Sequence record: LC667451.1
DNA length: 64,000 bases
Reading direction: 5' to 3' (one strand)
Shown: in pieces, positions 2,709 through 14,470 of the stretch
Position numbering within the stretch: position 1 is the stretch's first letter
Layout of the letters: every line of letters begins with the position of its first letter
Position numbers and translations under genes: made by a program
Notes under the pieces: generated by a model
What the model was told of the DNA's origin: nothing
Database searches by the model: none
What the model saw: the letters and a program-made list of their open reading frames with translations, nothing else

Positions 2709-2766
2709 TTATTGTCACTCCTTGTCGACCTACAGGATCACGCAAGGGGATAAAAAACAAATCGAC

Positions 2767-2818
2767 GGCATAAAAAGGAAAAAGGAGAGGGACGATTCGG
2801 GCCGTCCCTCTCTAAGAC
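2767..2818 (-). terminator. Intrinsic terminator hairpin with TATGCC tail
   Basis: Stem GAGAGGGACG (2785-2794) / CGTCCCTCTC (2803-2812); on the minus strand followed by T-tracts and TATGCCG. Confidence 0.7.
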
Positions 2819-2895
2819 TACAGGTCGTTACAAAGCAAAGCTTACAGCATTCAACCGCTTGGTCGCGAAACCAACTTCCAGCTACCATCCAACTG

Positions 2896-3231
2896 AAATC
2901 GGGGTAGACCATTGGGGCTGACCCATTCTTAGTTCGCCACTCGACCGTTTTGGCAGGGAGACTCCCGATTAATGCGGCCATTGCGGGTGCGGAACCGCTC
3001 AAGCTGCAATCAGGACAGGGTCGAGCACGTGGCGAGCGCGTCACATCAGGGAAACAAGGAAGAAACCCAAAGTAACGGAATGAATCAGCCCCGGCCTAGG
3101 CAATGGCGCGGTGGCTCTTGCGAGCTCGCGCAGGAGTTCTCGATCATTTGCAGGCGGGAGGAGGAACCGCATGGATAATCGAGCACGGGCTTGCCGGGCC
3201 CTTCTCTTCAGAACATTACGGAACCCCGATA
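2896..3231 (+). ncRNA. Putative structured non-coding RNA A (~335 nt), family unknown
   Basis: No credible ORF. Nested helices 2898-2905/3223-3230, 2913-2921/3085-3093, 2932-2946/3019-3037, 2981-2986/3004-3009 and 3113-3122/3129-3138. G-U wobbles form only on the + strand. Confidence 0.6.
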
Positions 3232-3244
3232 AATTTAACTGAGG

Positions 3245-3646
3245 TTACGCTATTGTCAGTGCCACATTGTTGTAACCATTGGCTACCAGCGCCGCCTGGA
3301 TCTTCGGGATGTCCTGCGGTGTAACACCGCTGATGGTTGCCGTCACGGTCTGGGCCGTCACAAGCGTCACCGAGCTATCGACAATCCAGGGTACCCCCAG
3401 GATCGTGTATGCGCCACTTTGCGTCTTGACCTTGATGTACAGGTACGAAGACGGGTCATTCGGTGTGTTGGTCTGTGGACCAAACGAGGGGAAAAACTTG
3501 ATGTGCAGCGACGTGACGTCCTTCTGCTTCATCGCGTCTTCATACGACATCACCGAGGTGACCTTGACGTTGTTCCAGTCATTGCCGAGCAGGCTCGGGT
3601 ACACCTGGAAGTTGTACGTCTGCCCGATTTGGAAGTTATAAGCCAT
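3245..3646 (-). CDS. Conserved jumbo-phage protein, probably virion structural (133 aa; start re-assigned to MAYNFQ)
   Basis: Strong host-like codon bias from 3646; beta-rich sequence; position next to the polymerase resembles phiKZ-like phages as I recall it. Confidence 0.75.
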   Translation of the reverse strand: MAYNFQIGQTYNFQVYPSLLGNDWNNVKVTSVMSYEDAMKQKDVTSLHIKFFPSFGPQTNTPNDPSSYLYIKVKTQSGAYTILGVPWIVDSSVTLVTAQTVTATISGVTPQDIPKIQAALVANGYNNVALTIA

Positions 3647-3677
3647 GGTTCCCGTGCCCAAATGAACAAAAAAAAGA

Positions 3678-4097
3678 TCAGAAGGGCATGTGGTCCAGGA
3701 TGACATCGTTACCGAGGAAACGATGGACATAGTACGGGAAGCCGTAGCCGCTACCGGCTGCGCCCGCACGAAGTCCACCAATCTCCACGAGACGATTGTG
3801 AATGTTACTCACCAAGTCCTGAACCGCTGCCCGCAATCGCTGATACTCCACAGACTCGCGGTTTTCATAAACCGGGTCTACTATACGATTGGTGATGGGC
3901 AGGGCTTGGAGCTTGGCTGGACCATTGGCTGAATAGTCCATGTAGCAATCAAAGATCTGCGTGATAATCTCATGCCGATCGTTGAAGTGAATCGGCAAAC
4001 CTTGCGTTTGCGCGACGAACTGCGCCCAAAAGTCATCCAGCTGCACGATGATCTGTTTGGAGTAACCGCCTCGGTCTGCCGTATCCATAATGTTCAC
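3678..4097 (-). CDS. Hypothetical protein, member of tandem paralog-like array
   Basis: 139 aa; overlaps the upstream gene stop; C-terminal 'FPYYVHRFLGNDVIL'. Confidence 0.75.
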   Translation of the reverse strand: MNIMDTADRGGYSKQIIVQLDDFWAQFVAQTQGLPIHFNDRHEIITQIFDCYMDYSANGPAKLQALPITNRIVDPVYENRESVEYQRLRAAVQDLVSNIHNRLVEIGGLRAGAAGSGYGFPYYVHRFLGNDVILDHMPF

Positions 4098-4495
4098 AAG
4101 TTCGGGTTGATGTTATCCACGATCAGGCGCTGCAAGACCAAGTCATTGCCGTACCAATCGTGGAACTGGTAATACAGGTAGCCGTTTTGGTAGGCGCGCA
4201 GATACTTCAGCTTTTGCAAGACATCTTCGCCAAAGCTGTGAATCAAACGCGCCAACTTGATGTACGCTGTTTCATGAGCGTCGCCGAGTTCGTTCCGGAT
4301 CAGTTCGAGCGCCGCGTATTGCAACTCCATGCGGGCATGCTGCTCGTACATGATTGAGTCGAGCACAATCTGGGCGATCGTGTTCGGCATCAGGAAGTCA
4401 AACTCGCCAGCGCCTTTGATAAGCTCGCGCAAACCCGCATCTGTATCCAACACCAGGAGCGTCGGATAGTGTTGGGCCTGAACCGAAGCCCTCAA
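4094..4495 (-). CDS. Hypothetical protein, array member (likely TTG start at 4495)
   Basis: Coding-like from 'LRASVQAQHYPTLLVLD'; C-terminal 'YLYYQFHDWYGNDLVL'. The upstream part of track ORF 4094-4756 lies within the next gene. Confidence 0.7.
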   Translation of the reverse strand: MRASVQAQHYPTLLVLDTDAGLRELIKGAGEFDFLMPNTIAQIVLDSIMYEQHARMELQYAALELIRNELGDAHETAYIKLARLIHSFGEDVLQKLKYLRAYQNGYLYYQFHDWYGNDLVLQRLIVDNINPNL

Positions 4496-4928
4496 AATCG
4501 GCTTTGGTGAGCCGGACAAGATGATCACTGTGGACCTCCGCAAACAGGTAAGGGAAGAAGCCGTCAGGCGGCAGGTAAGCGTGCAACTCGGTGACGAGGC
4601 GCTGATAGATCCCGAGGCCCAGTCGCATGACCGCTTCAAAGCGATCCCGATGTGGACCTCGAGGTATGTCGGCCTCTTCAATGCGCACATCACCCTGAAT
4701 GGCATCGTAAGCGAAGCTGATCGCATACTCGACCAGATTCTCCTCAGCGAATTCATTCACGGTAATGGCGGAGAACACGTTATCCAAAACTTCCCGCAAA
4801 TCAAAAGGAGGCATGAAAGGCAGTGTGGTCACTTGCAGGAAACCACCGATCTCAGCCGTCAAATCAATAAGCAGGTTTTCAGATAGCACGCCGTCTTCCC
4901 CACTGCGAAGTGAGTGTTTCCACTCCAA
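4398..4928 (-). CDS. Hypothetical protein, array member (alternative GTG start at 4889)
   Basis: N-terminal 'NLLIDLT' and C-terminal 'GFFPYLFAEVHSDHLVRL' pattern. Confidence 0.7.
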   Translation of the reverse strand: MEWKHSLRSGEDGVLSENLLIDLTAEIGGFLQVTTLPFMPPFDLREVLDNVFSAITVNEFAEENLVEYAISFAYDAIQGDVRIEEADIPRGPHRDRFEAVMRLGLGIYQRLVTELHAYLPPDGFFPYLFAEVHSDHLVRLTKADFEGFGSGPTLSDAPGVGYRCGFARAYQRRWRV

Positions 4929-5367
4929 TGATCAAATCCCGATCCTGCCAACGCGTTTGCTGATCGTCGATGTGATAGAGCCGGGTCCGAAAGAGATCCT
5001 CCATCATCACGAGGACTGCTTCCTCGATCGTCTGGGTGATCAATTCCAACTCACCGATGCGGCTCATGTACTCGCTCAGGTCCACGGGCTTGGGGCGATA
5101 CTCACCCGTATTCTCGTTGATCTGGATATGAGACCGATTGGTGTAGTCGTCGAACTTCTTCAAGACAAAGTCCACGAGTGCGCTGTGATGATGTTGCAAC
5201 GAGCGCTGATAGTCGACGTAGGGGGATCGCTCCTGAAACGACGTGGACAAGACTGCATTCTTTACGACGGACCGCACGCCGCCTCGCAGAAAGAGCTTGT
5301 ACAGATCATCGTACGCCAACGACTCGGTGACCAGGTCAAATGTCGGTAAGATGACAAGCTTTGACAT
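4879..5367 (-). CDS. Hypothetical protein, array member (162 aa)
   Basis: ATG with AAGGA SD; 'WQDRDLIIGV' C-terminus. Confidence 0.75.
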   Translation of the reverse strand: MSKLVILPTFDLVTESLAYDDLYKLFLRGGVRSVVKNAVLSTSFQERSPYVDYQRSLQHHHSALVDFVLKKFDDYTNRSHIQINENTGEYRPKPVDLSEYMSRIGELELITQTIEEAVLVMMEDLFRTRLYHIDDQQTRWQDRDLIIGVETLTSQWGRRRAI

Positions 5368-5401
5368 GATGCTTTCCTTGTTTATAACGACCTAGTTGTA
5401 C

Positions 5402-5809
5402 TTAACTGTATTCCGTCACCACGACGTCCCACGTGTTGAGCAAGTCAGCAGTAATGCGCTGGCTTGTATCGTGAAACACCAGATGCGGCAGTTGCGCGGA
5501 GATGTAAATGACGACCATATCGAACGTCCGGTTACAGAGCTCATGCGCTGCACGCGGGTCCATGCCCGCGTTTTGTAAGATTGCCTTGGCTTGCACCAAG
5601 TATTCTGTCGGATAATCTTCGCACGTGTTGTCGAACACGTCACGCAGAATGGCCAACAGAAAGTTGCTGCTATCGTAGTTGCGCCAACCAGGGTCGAGCA
5701 CGACTTCGGGATTGCGAGGGTTGCGCTTGCGAGCTTTGTACAAAGCCAACTCGCGTTGCACGAACAACGCCACATCCAACAGCGAGATCAGAGTACTGCT
5801 CGCGGCCAT
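5402..5809 (-). CDS. Hypothetical protein, array member (start MAASST)
   Basis: GAGG SD before 5809; 'LISLLDVALF' N-terminus and 'LLNTWDVVV' C-terminus. Confidence 0.7.
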   Translation of the reverse strand: MAASSTLISLLDVALFVQRELALYKARKRNPRNPEVVLDPGWRNYDSSNFLLAILRDVFDNTCEDYPTEYLVQAKAILQNAGMDPRAAHELCNRTFDMVVIYISAQLPHLVFHDTSQRITADLLNTWDVVVTEYS

Positions 5810-5832
5810 CTTCTTTGCCTCAGTCTCCAGCG

Positions 5833-6624
5833 TTAATCGTCGTAACCGCGACCATGCTCGAGCATCCACGAGTAAATCCGATAATCGATGGTTTTCTCCA
5901 CCGTCATCTGCGTGTTGCTCACTTTTGAGAAGTGCATGATCCAGCGATCCGTGCCCAGGAACTCCAGCAGCTGTTGGAACAAGTCATTCAGCTGCAAGAG
6001 TATCGAGTCACAGATGTCGATACCCATGTAGAAAAATTGCTTTTCCTGCTCCGACACCAGATCGATTTCAACATGGTGCTTGTGCTTCATGGTTCGCGCC
6101 CGGCCACGGACGTACTCGATCTCTTGGGTATTAACCGCGCCCTCGATACTGATGCCTGAGCGTTGGAACTGCTCGAGCAGAAACGGCCTGATCACCCCGT
6201 ACAGATTGGTCTGCTTGGGACCGACCTTGGGCATCTGCTGGCTGCCTGACCAGCGCGCATGATTCTGCACGATATGGTCAATCAAGTCGACAATCATGTT
6301 CCGACTGCGCAGCGACCACAGCGGCTTGTCGCTTAAGAGCGAGGCTTGTTTGTGTACGAGTACGAGGTCGCCCTTGTGGTCGAGCACGTCACCCAGAATA
6401 GGCTGATTCCAGTTAAAGGGAATCGCTTCCGCAACATCGCCAGTCGGACCTGTTGCGCGACCAGCGTAAAAGTACTTGCGGTCCCGATACAACACAGGCT
6501 CACATTGGCCCGCCATAAACAAACCTTCCGGATTCGGCAGCATGAACGATCCGGCAGCAGCTTCGACTGCCTGGATGTAGTCTGCGAGTTCCAGCATTAG
6601 CGTTCCTGCGATTTTCAGTTCCAT
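5833..6624 (-). CDS. Hypothetical protein (263 aa), enlarged array member
   Basis: 'TLMLELADY' N-terminus; long open frame; coupled overlap with the upstream gene. Confidence 0.75.
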   Translation of the reverse strand: MELKIAGTLMLELADYIQAVEAAAGSFMLPNPEGLFMAGQCEPVLYRDRKYFYAGRATGPTGDVAEAIPFNWNQPILGDVLDHKGDLVLVHKQASLLSDKPLWSLRSRNMIVDLIDHIVQNHARWSGSQQMPKVGPKQTNLYGVIRPFLLEQFQRSGISIEGAVNTQEIEYVRGRARTMKHKHHVEIDLVSEQEKQFFYMGIDICDSILLQLNDLFQQLLEFLGTDRWIMHFSKVSNTQMTVEKTIDYRIYSWMLEHGRGYDD

Positions 6625-7019
6625 TTTCTTTCGTAGCTGTAGTTAGAGGCCCAGTGGGTTTGCTTGAAATACCACAAGTACAGATCAATCCCACGAACGT
6701 CCAAGTCGATGTAACAATGCTCCCCGTACAACTGTGGAACTTTGATGTATAGTCCTGTCAGATGGTCCAGATCTATCATGTTGCGCACACGATCGTACAG
6801 GCGACGATACTTCCAGTCACGGGAGTCGTGACGCGTGCTCAACAGATAATAGACCCGTTCAACGGTTTCTTTCACGATCCATTCGACCACCTGCTCCTCG
6901 GTCAGTCCCTGATCCGAGATTTCATCCGCAATGCCCCTGACCGCCTTTCGCAGGATGGTCAGGAAGTCGTTAGCATCCTGAATCAGCAAAGCCTGTGGGG
7001 TGACGGTAAGTAGGTCCAT
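6615..7019 (-). CDS. Hypothetical protein (134 aa), first array member
   Basis: AAGGAG SD; 'ALLIQDANDF' N-terminus and 'VRGIDLYLWY' C-terminus. Confidence 0.75.
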   Translation of the reverse strand: MDLLTVTPQALLIQDANDFLTILRKAVRGIADEISDQGLTEEQVVEWIVKETVERVYYLLSTRHDSRDWKYRRLYDRVRNMIDLDHLTGLYIKVPQLYGEHCYIDLDVRGIDLYLWYFKQTHWASNYSYERKWN

Positions 7020-7079
7020 AATAGCTCCTTATACAAACCATACGCCGGTTACGTTTGTTTTACCTTCGCATGGTCCAAC

Positions 7080-7139
7080 GGCATAAAAAAATAATCAGTC
7101 CCATTTGTACCCTCTTTTGGAGAAGGCATAAATGGGACT
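7080..7139 (-). terminator. Intrinsic terminator with TATGCC tail
   Basis: 10-bp stem AGTCCCATTT (7097-7106) / AAATGGGACT (7130-7139); on the minus strand followed by a T-rich tract and TATGCCG. Confidence 0.75.
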
Positions 7140-7140
7140 C

Positions 7141-7789
7141 GGCTCCCCCCACGAATTACCGTAATCAGACACTGGATGATCCAGGCTGAACGGAGTTACT
7201 GGGCAGGAGCCGGTCGGGACATCTCAAACACGAGCCAAGGGTTAGGTCCTAGTGCGATCTTCCAGACAGTCTGCAGACCATCTTTTTACCCGTCCCGTAG
7301 GCGGTGGACAGAAGCTTCGGATACTCCCTTGAAAACTGGCGTGTTTATTGCCTACTGCGCACCGGTGGTGGCAGTCTACTTGGTCTAACAGGTATCAAAG
7401 ACTTCCTAGCGCCTGAATGCACCCCCTACGCCTAATGCGCGGTTCGGCTGGTATGGAGCTAGGAGTCCGCGCATGGCCAAATCATCGGTCCGAATCAACA
7501 AGCCATGCGCGTCGCCTCAATGGCTGAAGGTACTACGGAGTCCCTTACCCCGCGTTGCCTTCCCCAGTCGGGGACGTCGCGCATGATGTCTATTCACCCC
7601 CAGACGCGCCTCCGGGAGTGAGGACCGATGAACTTTACGGTCAGCGGCGGCTTGAATCGACGGAAACCACGAAAAATCGTGATAGACAAACCGTGCGAAA
7701 TCACTCCACCACCACCTGGCCAACGATCTAAATTGGCCAAACATCGGTTCTTATTGCCTTTGTATCGTGGTTGGTCCGCTAACCCCGTG
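7141..7789 (+). ncRNA. Putative large structured non-coding RNA B (~650 nt), family unknown
   Basis: Gene-free. Helices 7141-7146/7206-7211, 7275-7280/7381-7386, 7297-7304/7348-7355, 7469-7477/7502-7510 and 7717-7723/7733-7739. Perfect 10-bp pairing 7482-7491/7622-7631 starts from a hairpin loop (pseudoknot). G-U wobbles favour the + strand. Confidence 0.6.
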
Positions 7790-8797
7790 TTACAGGATCA
7801 GGCCCGATTCTTCGTCCGCCTTGTCGCCGGAGCCCAGGAAGTTCTTCGGGCCACGACGAGCACCCTGGTCTTCCGTCAGCTGGGCGATCAGCTTCGTGAT
7901 GCGTTCGACCGCCTCGTGCAGCACGCCGTCGCTGGTCACGAAATGCACCGGCGATTGCTTGGCCACCGCCTCGTTGAGGTCCGCGGGCAGCAGGCCGAGG
8001 AAGCGCACTTCCGGCACCACCGGGAAGGTTGCATCCGCACCCGGCTTGGCGAGCGTCGCCACGCTGATGACATTGCCGATACCGTTGGGCGATTCGCCGC
8101 CGTTCAGGATCGTCAGTGCTGCCAGCATCGGCTGGTCGAACGTCGTGACCTTGTCGAAGCGCAACCAGTTGTACAGGTCGCGCGAATCGAGTTCGGCGTT
8201 TTCACGACTGAAGAGCACTGCCAGGCCTTCGACGAGCGCTTCGACGTTCTGGTCGACTTCGGCACGGGAAGCATCGCCGCTGTTTTCCAGGTACGCGATC
8301 ACGATCGGTGCCTTGACCGACTTGCGGGCGATGTGCTCGTACGATTTGAACGTGTTGAGCGTGTTCATCGCGTGCAGACGCGTCGATGCATCGCCGATCA
8401 TGATCACGATCGTCGGTTGATCGCGAGTGATCAGTTCTTCGACCAGCAGCGGACCGATAGCCGAACCCGAACCACCACCCGCCGTGTGAATGACGACGTT
8501 GATGGTGCCCGGCTTGTGGGCGTGCAGGATTTCCGGCAGACGCGGCTTGACTTCCGGCGCGATCTCGCGACGAATCTGGCCAGCGCCGTCCTTGCCTTCG
8601 ATCAGATAGATCGCATCGGCAGGCAGACCTTCGCGCAGGTTCGACTTCGACGAATCGATATACGAGATCGCCACGTTCGCGTAACCGGGGTCACGACGCG
8701 CGCGGAACTGCTCGAGGCGGCTGGCGATGTTGATGCCACCGCCGCCCGTTGCGTACACTTGCAACAGGCCTTTCACTTTCTCGATGTTTGCGGACAT
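7790..8797 (-). CDS. phuZ: PhuZ/TubZ phage tubulin (335 aa; start MSANIEK)
   Basis: 'ATGGGGINIA' N-terminal loop, tubulin signature 'TAGGGSGS', 'YIDSS', and an acidic C-terminal tail ending 'SGLIL'. AAGGAAAGGA SD upstream. Confidence 0.93.
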   Translation of the reverse strand: MSANIEKVKGLLQVYATGGGGINIASRLEQFRARRDPGYANVAISYIDSSKSNLREGLPADAIYLIEGKDGAGQIRREIAPEVKPRLPEILHAHKPGTINVVIHTAGGGSGSAIGPLLVEELITRDQPTIVIMIGDASTRLHAMNTLNTFKSYEHIARKSVKAPIVIAYLENSGDASRAEVDQNVEALVEGLAVLFSRENAELDSRDLYNWLRFDKVTTFDQPMLAALTILNGGESPNGIGNVISVATLAKPGADATFPVVPEVRFLGLLPADLNEAVAKQSPVHFVTSDGVLHEAVERITKLIAQLTEDQGARRGPKNFLGSGDKADEESGLIL

Positions 8798-8882
8798 GTT
8801 CCTTTCCTTGTTTTTAAACGGAGCATCACTCCTACATAGTAGGCTATGCTCGGGTAAAAAATGCCCAGCGTAAGCCGGGCAC

Positions 8883-11543: not shown

Positions 11544-11753
11544 TCAGGACATCCGATTAGCACCCGCCTTAACATTTGCCGTGAAGCTCAAGGGCATGCC
11601 CGGCCAGGGTACCGAATCAGTCGGCGTGTTGTCGTGTTTGGGCGATTCTGGATTGATCGCATTCAGGTTGTACAGACAGTTCGGACTGAAGAATGCGCCG
11701 ATTTCACCATGGGGAAGATGTACCAGCGGTACCAACTTTTCTTGCTTAGCCAC
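11544..11753 (-). CDS. Small hypothetical protein (69 aa; GTG start, MAKQEKL)
   Basis: GGAG SD immediately upstream of GTG at 11753, downstream of a terminator hairpin. Confidence 0.45.
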   Translation of the reverse strand: MAKQEKLVPLVHLPHGEIGAFFSPNCLYNLNAINPESPKHDNTPTDSVPWPGMPLSFTANVKAGANRMS

Positions 11754-11820
11754 ACAAACTCCGAAATAGAACCAAAAAAAAGAGGATCGATGAAGGGGTG
11801 CCCGAAGGCACCCCCACACA

Positions 11821-12282
11821 TTACAGCGCAAACTCGTCGCAGTAATAATCTACGTGCAGAAGTTCTTCGCCAACTTCAGTTACCACGAATGGGTCGTTAT
11901 CGAGCACGAAGCCGATCTGGCTGCTGAGCAGAATCTTCAGGGCCGCACGACTGATGATCCATTCGTCATCCGTATCCACCATGATGGCCAGGAAACGGTC
12001 ATCGACGACTTCGTTCATGTCGTCCCAGAGTTCCTCCAGAAACTGGCTATGTTTCTGGAGTTCCGGGAAGCCAATCTCGCGATGATTGTGGATCAGAGAA
12101 AACAACCTGATGCGCCCTGCGATGAGTTCCAGACCACGATAGGCGCCGATATGGGTATCCTGCGGCTGGCTGTCGTAATGATCGAAGATCTTCTTGATCG
12201 CGACGAGCAGTGATTCATTGGCGCGGACGCGATTGAAGATGTTGATAATGGCGAGGAGGTATTCGGCTTGTTGGCGACGCAT
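11821..12282 (-). CDS. Hypothetical protein (153 aa; start MRRQQAE)
   Basis: AAGGA SD at the re-assigned start. Confidence 0.7.
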   Translation of the reverse strand: MRRQQAEYLLAIINIFNRVRANESLLVAIKKIFDHYDSQPQDTHIGAYRGLELIAGRIRLFSLIHNHREIGFPELQKHSQFLEELWDDMNEVVDDRFLAIMVDTDDEWIISRAALKILLSSQIGFVLDNDPFVVTEVGEELLHVDYYCDEFAL

Positions 12283-13751: not shown

Positions 13752-13820
13752 GGTACTCTCCTAGTTTCCAGTGTTGGTTAAGGTAACTCAAGCGACTCTA
13801 TTGGCTTGATGTCACCCCAA

Positions 13821-13842
13821 GAATATATGTTTGAAATATTTT
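13821..13842 (-). promoter_or_regulatory. Candidate early (virion RNAP) promoter, ACATATATT in AT-rich context
   Basis: Minus strand reads AAAATATTTCAAACATATATTC, similar to the phiKZ early TATATTAC consensus. The same ACATATAT occurs at 32280-32287. Confidence 0.45.
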
Positions 13843-13889
13843 TGAATCGAGATTTGACGGCATAAAGGCCAGGATCGACCCCGGCCCAA

Positions 13890-14280
13890 TTTTTCGCTAG
13901 TTCTACTTCAAGTAAGAAAATATCTTAATCTTACATGATACGATTCCAAGCGATATCCTCTCTAGGAGTATAATAAAGAGGGGGCTTCCGCCCCCTCTAC
14001 GCTATTCTCTTCTACTCCGCTTCGCTCCGCGTCGCTCTGCTCCTTGACACATAAGTGATTAGCTATGCAGTATTTTTTTACTAGAATAGAGAAATAGTCT
14101 TTAGAATCAATGACTTAGAACTGCGTAGCAAATAGCCGGGGGAGGGCTTGTCCCCTCCCCCTCTTTTTAAAAAGTTCTAGGTAGCTGAACGCAAAGGAAG
14201 ATCGAGCGCTGGCGCGAGGGGGAAGGAAAAGACCAGCGTAGCGACAGAGAGTGTACGGACAGGCATTGGTTTGTATAGTA
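13890..14280. other. AT-rich divergent intergenic region with hairpins and (T/G)CGCTC(C/T)GC-like repeats; possible origin or regulatory hub
   Basis: Strand switch point; low GC; hairpins at 13979-13998 and 14137-14162; iterated CTCCGC/TTCGCT/GTCGCT at 14012-14044. Confidence 0.35.
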
Positions 14281-14470
14281 CGTGAATGACACCGCATGGC
14301 CGAAAACCCGTCCAGCGTTGCAAACCTTTCTTAGGGGCGCGGCGGGCGGCGGGAATTTATCGTGCTCCTCAATCATGTTAGGACCTGCAGGCGCCAGTGT
14401 TCTTTTATCCTGTAGGCTCAAATATTGTGAGCACCTTTTTTCCGTTCCTACACCCCTAGAGGAAGAACCC

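Follow-up and report, generated by a model that had tools for sequence, protein, structure and literature searches.

Two probable structured RNAs, unrelated to each other and conserved in one phage clade, flank a small-gene array between the tubulin and DNA polymerase genes of Burkholderia phage FLC9

In the jumbo phage FLC9, which infects Burkholderia glumae, the phage tubulin gene phuZ and the DNA polymerase gene (pol) are separated by a group of small genes and by two long intergenic gaps, and it is these gaps, together with the two structured RNAs that they very probably encode (RNA-A ahead of pol and RNA-B behind phuZ), that we describe here. The window analysed, 64,000 nucleotides long, matches bases 1-64000 of the phage genome (LC667451.1; 321,833 bp) at 100% identity. 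The minus strand holds every gene of the phuZ-pol region, and on that strand, read 5' to 3', one meets in turn phuZ, a 770-bp gap (gap B, 7020-7789), gp10, gp9, gp8, gp7, gp6', gp5, gp4, gp3, a 536-bp gap (gap A, 2709-3244) and pol. A preliminary description of this DNA, made from its letters, had given the same layout in reverse (pol, RNA-A, a 133-aa gene, seven small genes, a terminator, RNA-B and phuZ), and in this it was correct.

Three of the genes match a family profile along their full length. These are phuZ itself (FLC9_gp11, 7790-8797; phrog_4733, E 7.7e-79), pol (FLC9_gp2, 579-2708), the product of which is a divergent family B DNA polymerase (PF20286, E 1.6e-240; phrog_2927), and gp3 (3245-3646), which encodes a 133-aa SH3DP protein, an SH3-fold domain associated with phage DNA polymerases (PF20287, E 2.6e-32; phrog_3235). 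The seven small genes of the array (3678-7019) are gp4 (3678-4088), gp5 (4094-4528), gp6' (4398-4877), gp7 (4879-5367), gp8 (5402-5809), gp9 (5833-6597) and gp10 (6615-7019), again all on the minus strand. Here gp6' takes the place of the annotated FLC9_gp6 (4521-4886, plus strand), which is probably a mis-call on the wrong strand: the minus-strand frame has protein homologues of 58-91% identity in every member of the FLC9 clade and shows third-position variation, and where it overlaps the start of gp5, over ~130 nt, the constraint is carried by the gp5 frame.

To place the gaps in context, we assembled relatives of FLC9 from IMG/VR, JGI and Logan, with ~13 contigs coming from protein-anchored searches of IMG/VR and seven more from a gp9 protein search combined with contig look-ups, for ~20 uncultivated phage contigs in all. 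Every relative found has the same gene order with long gaps at both sites, both gaps can be aligned end to end, and RNA-A and RNA-B each occur as one copy at a fixed position. When FLC9 is compared with clade members further removed from it, the DNA identity of gap B comes to 72-75%, above phuZ (66-68%), gp10 (62-65%) and gp9 (61-63%), while gap A (67-81%) is comparable to the small genes. Within both alignments invariant blocks alternate with variable, indel-rich ones. Because the indels are mostly not multiples of three and the variable columns are spread flatly over the codon phases (80/73/79 in gap A and 100/96/110 in gap B, versus 135/88/238 in phuZ), both gaps are non-coding in character. 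The term ‘gene-free’ that had been applied to them is nonetheless uncertain for gap B, which contains an open frame (7744-7517) with 38 coding-like codons at its beginning; we return to this frame below.

Both gaps are predicted to be structured. As single sequences they fold better than dinucleotide shuffles on either strand (z -3.6 to -5.5), and RNAalifold with column-shuffle controls gave z values for A of -8.2 on the minus and -4.0 on the plus strand, and for B of -13.1 and -11.5, with consensus fold energies of -103.9 (minus) versus -74.4 (plus) for A and -210.2 versus -174.9 for B. The pairs themselves show compensatory evolution. The initial alignments, with pairing in 97-98% of cells, contained 25 double-changed pairs (both sides altered) out of 91 for A and 43 out of 190 for B, versus 2-9 in controls with the alignment slid. 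Full RNA-A (16 sequences) has 28 double-changed pairs out of 71, versus 3-6 in slid controls, and RNA-B (15 sequences) has 60 out of 165, versus 13-21. For the core domain of RNA-A (2903-3100, minus strand), a covariance-model alignment of 14 distinct sequences had 97.1% of its cells paired and 32 of its 51 pairs double-changed, a count reached by none of 500 shuffles (slid controls, 5-11). In both elements, then, compensatory changes exceed the controls, as expected of a conserved structured RNA.

The strand is likewise indicated. When the alignments are read on the minus strand, G·U pairs make up 12-15% of paired cells (132 cells in A and 199 in B), and these same cells become C·A mismatches when read on the opposite strand. 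As fold energy, G·U pairs and both intrinsic terminators (see below) all favour the minus strand, the RNAs are sense to the genes, and the label ‘antisense’ that they had been given was wrong. Nor can they be antisense regulators of the array, pol or phuZ transcripts, as was once suggested, since no gene lies opposite either tract. We therefore regard RNA-A and RNA-B, with high confidence, as real sense-strand structured RNAs. The earlier view of both long tracts (2709-3244 and 7020-7789) as genuine elements that bracket the array between phuZ and pol is upheld; they are conserved and structured and have no match among known families.

The position of the tracts beside pol and phuZ, and the long inverted repeats in them, might also suggest that they function as DNA, for example as a replication origin or as a packaging or partition site near the polymerase and tubulin genes. 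This we consider very improbable. The pairing is strand-asymmetric, as the 132 (A) and 199 (B) G·U cells that turn into C·A mismatches on the other strand show, the minus strand folds better, and compensatory changes keep RNA-type pairs; moreover, the tracts hold no direct-repeat arrays, and the elements are delimited by terminators.

Neither element resembles a catalogued RNA. A search of the whole window with the 4227 models of Rfam 15, which include group I and II introns, RNase P, 6S, tmRNA, GOLLD, ROOL, OLE, raiA, HEARO and small ribozymes, returned no match at gathering thresholds; the two gaps searched at E values up to 10 gave nothing beyond chance hairpin matches of 25 bits or less, and ARAGORN found no tRNA or tmRNA gene in the window. 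RNA-A and RNA-B show no homology to each other by nhmmer, and neither has a second copy within the window.

Where the RNAs begin and end can be judged from the layout of terminators and a promoter-like box. RNA-A (~470 nt; 2777-3244, minus strand) ends in a terminator hairpin of 11 pairs followed by CTTTTTCC (2812-2785), and RNA-B (~700 nt; 7085-7789, minus strand) in one of 18 pairs followed by U7 (7139-7097), and both terminator stems contain compensatory changes. Directly after each of the two terminators comes the box TTTTTATGCCG, at 2766-2776 in the pol leader and at 7079-7089 in the gp10 leader (7020-7089), both on the minus strand. The core of this box, TATGCCG, occurs 15 times in the window, 10 times between genes, and most of the intergenic copies lie 49-115 nt ahead of a start codon. 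Besides the two just named, positions of (T)TATGCCG include 13858-13865, 15600, 13222 and 392, and the motif often stands immediately after a terminator hairpin. The same hairpin-plus-box arrangement is found in phages RP12 and FLC1-1B and in the most distant relative of FLC9 (L046, below), and LucasX has the box. On this pattern (T)TATGCCG is likely a promoter element of the phage group to which FLC9 belongs.

Ahead of phuZ there is a terminator-like hairpin after gp12 followed by a conserved leader (CTACTATGTAGGAG...; together 8798-8882, minus strand), so that phuZ and RNA-B would form a unit of their own. The conserved blocks start within ~10 nt of the gp3 stop codon in RNA-A and ~20 nt past the phuZ stop codon in RNA-B, and between stop codon and RNA start neither site has an intervening terminator or TATGCCG box. 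From this layout we infer three units: phuZ–RNA-B–terminator; promoter–gp10 to gp3–RNA-A–terminator, with gp3 as its final gene; and promoter–pol, with pol as the first gene of the unit downstream of RNA-A.

RNA-A would then be the long 3' tail of the gp10-gp3 operon mRNA, and RNA-B that of the phuZ mRNA, each tail folding into a compact multi-helix body. Near the 5' side of each element is a purine tract (3198-3206 in RNA-A and 7751-7761 in RNA-B, minus strand) that is predicted to pair with the U-run of the terminator; such pairing would close the body and shield its 3' terminus, and the tail might then endure as a stable RNA. Both elements sit between a stop codon and a terminator, the position of non-coding RNAs (ncRNAs) derived from 3' untranslated regions (3'-UTRs), and ncRNAs of this kind have been described from virulent phages, namely 3'UTR_PHIKZ298 of phiKZ and ncRNA1 and ncRNA2 of PAK_P3 (PMC8545117, PMC10914365). 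As in those phages, each FLC9 RNA fills the stretch from a stop codon to the intrinsic terminator of its unit, has no evident promoter to itself, and is conserved in close relatives. In contrast, the phiKZ and PAK_P3 ncRNAs measure ~90-210 nt and form one or two hairpins, whereas the FLC9 RNAs, which are not related to them in sequence, measure ~470 and ~700 nt and have 16 and 31 predicted helices, respectively. We know of no comparable RNA reported from phiKZ-like phages, in which the ncRNAs known to us are short UTR fragments. The phiKZ ncRNA ‘5'UTR_gp40’ was considered as a positional analogue and rejected: only 54 nt separate phuZ from gene 40 in phiKZ, and ‘p40’ is apparently another locus.

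What such tails might do is suggested, in the case of RNA-A, by its loops. Its 16 predicted helices are interspersed with many invariant unpaired bases, and two of them belong to hairpins whose loops are CU-rich and of the CCUCC type (hairpins ~3152-3170 and ~3042-3072, minus strand; conserved CCUCC-core loops ~3157-3164 and ~3051-3065), with compensatory changes in one of the stems. The loops are near-invariant in 10 genomes, except that one position of the second is U in FLC9, and they remain recognisable in L046. They are complementary to the AAGGAG ribosome-binding sites of the phage. C-rich or anti-Shine-Dalgarno loops that bind ribosome-binding sites occur in regulatory RNAs such as the UCCC-loop small RNAs of Staphylococcus. 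RNA-A may be likened to these in its two CCUCC-type loops and their complementarity to AAGGAG, but differs in that the loops are set within a 470-nt body and have no co-varying target, so that intramolecular contacts are possible instead. RNA-A could thus be pictured as an anti-Shine-Dalgarno-like domain that binds purine-rich RNA resembling a ribosome-binding site.

Downstream of RNA-A, the pol leader (2709-2776, minus strand) consists of the TTTTTATGCCG box and then a leader with a GTCGAC palindrome, AAGGAG and a GTG start codon, and its 3' part (2709-2745) is invariant in 10 genomes, though the polymerase proteins differ by up to ~14%; this part may be a translational operator. Across the terminator, this invariant leader is complementary to an invariant segment near the 3' end of RNA-A (~2819-2833), with 13 predicted pairs between them, and on read-through transcripts RNA-A would mask the ribosome-binding region of pol.

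RNA-B, with 31 predicted helices and again many invariant unpaired bases, invites a different comparison. A 17-nt box is repeated at 7733-7750 and 7474-7491, inside RNA-B only, and the ACCGAUG cores of the two copies (7742-7748 and 7483-7489, minus strand) have a single possible partner, CAUCGGU at 7624-7630, which is able to pair with either. In the same way, two CAUGCGCG-type boxes (near 7578-7584 and 7470-7476, minus strand) share one partner at 7503-7511. When either CAUCGGU pairing was forced in nine homologues, the two folds lay 0.2-7 kcal/mol apart, and the preferred state differed by genome. The first ACCGAUG box contains the conserved AUG (7744) of the embedded frame mentioned above, an unannotated 75-codon frame (7744-7517, minus strand) whose start codon thus falls within the ACCGAUG/CAUCGGU helix. 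Because CAUCGGU has two partners at near-equal energy, one of which holds this AUG, RNA-B can be read as a two-state conformational switch that would hide or expose the start codon of the frame. A strand with two predicted partners of near-equal energy, one covering a start codon, is also what riboswitches and translational switches have; unlike known switches, RNA-B would have its sensor downstream of the regulated start, is several times larger, and contains no recognisable ligand or aptamer family.

The frame itself raises the possibility, to which we give limited weight, that gap B is partly an unannotated gene, with the 75 codons encoding a small aromatic, basic protein and the remaining ~430 nt being non-coding RNA. 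All 15 close homologues keep the frame open from its conserved ATG at 7744, for 74-94 codons and despite indels, and its predicted product has a basic tail. Synonymous changes account for a fraction of 0.63 in codons 1-38 when these are read in frame, versus 0.22 and 0.06 out of frame, values that derive from pair counts which are not phylogenetically independent; the corresponding figures for phuZ are 0.71 in frame and 0.19 and 0.06 out of frame. Furthermore, gene callers report an open reading frame at about this position in one relative (L048), in which AAGGAG lies upstream of the ATG. Other features speak against a gene. Over the 15 sequences the variable columns are flat by codon phase (54/53/58), hairpins in the second half of the frame, towards the C-terminus, co-vary, sub-clades disagree in the C-terminal third, and helix arms with triplet-periodic UGG/GCC could imitate a coding signal.

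Taking these observations together, the best reading appears to us to be that RNA-A and RNA-B are structured domains at the 3' ends of two mRNAs and have regulatory roles, a reading that we favour only tentatively and at somewhat less than even confidence; the particular mechanisms outlined for the two RNAs are more doubtful still. Several observations weigh against it. The pairs on which the mechanisms depend do not vary: the end-closing pairs between purine tract and U-run are almost invariant, and the pairs between RNA-A and the pol leader and all of the RNA-B switch boxes are invariant, so that covariation lends them no support. The frame that the RNA-B switch would govern has no Shine-Dalgarno sequence in genomes other than L048, no coding signal in codons 39-75 (synonymous fractions 0.38, 0.25 and 0.41), no Pfam match, and no homologue in L046 or among 5.8 billion proteins. 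Pairing between an RNA-A loop (H8) and the phuZ leader, which offers 10 complementary nt in FLC9, was rejected as it shows no co-variation in relatives, and among runs of at least 8 nt no complementarity between RNA-A and RNA-B is conserved across all sub-clades. Finally, at 470 and 700 nt and with their numerous invariant unpaired bases, the two RNAs are far more complex than the leader and 3'-UTR switches known, a complexity no less compatible with a ribozyme or a trans-acting RNA.

The reading of the RNAs as stable, free-acting large RNAs, either cut from the mRNA tails or acting in trans as tails, ranks nearly equal to that of regulatory 3' tails, although taken by itself it too is an uncertain proposition. 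Protein-binding scaffolds or sponges, self-assembling particles and ribozymes are the roles envisaged. It would account for the size, the many invariant unpaired nucleotides and the multi-junction architecture of the two elements, and for the better conservation of RNA-B than of its flanking protein genes; the predicted closure of 5' and 3' ends is typical of stable RNAs, and the repeated self-complementary boxes of RNA-B could equally pair between molecules. Stable 3'-UTR-derived RNAs are, moreover, known in phiKZ and PAK_P3 (PMC8545117, PMC10914365). On the other hand, no promoter box of its own was seen for RNA-A or RNA-B, both invariably follow the same genes in the ~20 genomes, neither matches a known family of large RNAs, and searches for loop targets, A:B complementarity and leader co-variation found no partner protein or target for free-acting RNAs.

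The distribution of both elements is narrow. Megablast and blastn searches of 50,697 cultured-phage records with both gaps recovered FLC9 itself only, an exact-motif scan of IMG/VR found only the FLC9 clade, and the same type of scan of a metagenome collection added one contig. In GTDB genomes the RNA-B motif had no match, while three matches to the RNA-A motif were dismissed as chance seeds, two of them matching by nhmmer at the seed only and the third not at all. The most distant relative, L046 (Logan SRR29078115, a 70-kb contig), is 59% identical to FLC9 in pol, 42% in PhuZ, 42% in gp10 and 30% in gp9, and keeps long gaps at both sites (971 bp, 6662-7632, and 452 bp, 11573-12024). Its tracts are strongly diverged and were detected by covariance models only, with weak but independent matches to the RNA-A core (E 0.001) and to the mid domain of RNA-B (7350-7515 on the FLC9 minus strand; E 8e-4); besides its CU-rich loops, the ending in terminator plus box is recognisable. 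In contrast, RP12, FLC1-1B, RSL2, LucasX and phiKZ keep the phuZ to pol neighbourhood and show no RNA-A or RNA-B match in the regions examined, using covariance models of sub-domains of 200 nt or less. RP12 has 124 and 100 bp at the two RNA positions, and phiKZ has no more than 54 nt after phuZ. We thus have two structured RNA elements, unrelated to each other, that are confined to one phage clade.

A separate structured tract was noticed in the Ralstonia jumbo phages RP12 (L002 3907-4343) and FLC1-1B (L003 3035-3460). It is gene-free, 430 bp long and strongly structured (z -7.3), lies at a different place between the SH3DP gene and pol, flanked by a 605-aa gene and by the gene just ahead of pol, contains a hairpin with a 15-nt CU-rich loop, and ends in a terminator followed by TTATGCCG. 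As a homologue of RNA-A it was rejected, as two covariance models gave no match and searches with filters off returned terminator-hairpin noise only.

This distribution also bears on the idea, put forward when the locus was first described, that RNA-A, RNA-B and the seven small proteins make up one ribonucleoprotein acting in nucleus assembly, RNA export or counter-defence. The layout of promoters and terminators suggests that RNA-A is co-transcribed with the array, and the RNAs and homologues of the array co-occur in every clade member out to L046, despite identities there of 59% in pol and 30% in gp9. The co-occurrence and synteny proposed as a check on the idea are therefore present, and yet they are limited to one vertically related clade, are what shared descent predicts, and are explained by common descent alone. 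The RNAs, furthermore, are antisense to nothing, and no array protein matches a known RNA-binding family: none of the seven products, including gp6', had a Pfam, NCBIfam or PADLOC match above threshold, and gp4, gp5, gp7, gp8, gp9 and gp10 had no PHROG family match. Sequence relatives of the small genes were found inside the clade only, with gp10 having just three in a large protein collection. An RNA-protein module is in our view improbable, and as a proposal it is left unsupported by co-occurrence within one clade and the lack of an RNA-binding family match among the array proteins.

Further evidence on this point comes from gp9. Its predicted structure (predicted local distance difference test score, pLDDT, 80; predicted template-modelling score, pTM, 0.70) has no relative among solved structures (best E 0.13). 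The best match among predicted structures is an uncharacterized 272-aa protein of Ralstonia phage RP31 (E 3.6e-5; template-modelling score, TM, 0.42), which equals in length the RP12 protein ORF012, encoded two genes after phuZ just as gp9 is; profile comparison supports the likeness in a C-terminal motif only. Weaker fold matches to gp9 were seen in other jumbo phages, namely in Eowyn and in PhiPA3 (gp039). The modelled structure thus suggests a jumbo-phage-specific fold adjoining phuZ. The best fold relative of gp9 is thus in RP31, and neither RNA shows in the phuZ-pol region of RP12 or of FLC1-1B, both close to RP31. One array protein or more is therefore probably older than the RNAs or occurs without them, which, by the criterion proposed when the locus was first described, argues against an obligatory RNA-protein module.

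Few large ncRNAs with complex folds are known, and nearly all that have been solved have proved to be ribozymes, guide RNAs or unexpected RNA assemblies. GOLLD, ROOL, OLE and raiA are large ornate RNAs of unknown function, with GOLLD and ROOL being phage-associated (PMC12286853, PMC5737381). Like these, the FLC9 RNAs fall within 400-800 nt and have complex multi-junction predicted folds and highly conserved unpaired nucleotides; unlike them, they are predicted 3' tails of coding units in a phiKZ-like jumbo phage, occur in one narrow clade, and match no Rfam model even at E values up to 10. The boldest reading of the data, and in our estimation an unlikely one, is that RNA-A and RNA-B are two new large ornate RNA classes of one lineage of phiKZ-like, tubulin-encoding jumbo phages, released from mRNA tails as stable RNAs and acting as ribozymes, self-assembling particles or protein scaffolds; RNA-B might, in this case, also be a bistable sensor.

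The window contains one further long gap, contrary to the earlier statement that no other gene-free, densely paired tract of comparable length was apparent. This tract (13752-14470, 719 bp), which separates gp21 from the divergently oriented gp22, is gene-free, conserved (72-87% identity across four relatives) and moderately structured (alignment fold z -4.2 on the minus and -6.5 on the plus strand). It contains several bidirectional terminator-like hairpins as well as a hairpin with TTTATGCCG ahead of gp21, and may hold further small RNAs.

For the annotation of FLC9, these analyses add two to three RNA elements not previously annotated, a probable strand correction for gp6 and one possible small gene in RNA-B, while the TATGCCG promoter-like box helps to delimit transcription units in its phage group. 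Moreover, with ~470 and ~700 nt and strong covariation support, RNA-A and RNA-B provide two large-RNA candidates; the tubulin-encoding jumbo phage that carries them has been cultured and infects a plant-pathogenic Burkholderia, which makes their expression and structure directly measurable, and L046 is a valuable sequence for refining both structures. Should they be new ornate RNA classes, their role could lie in phage translation control or in RNA handling during nucleus-based infection.

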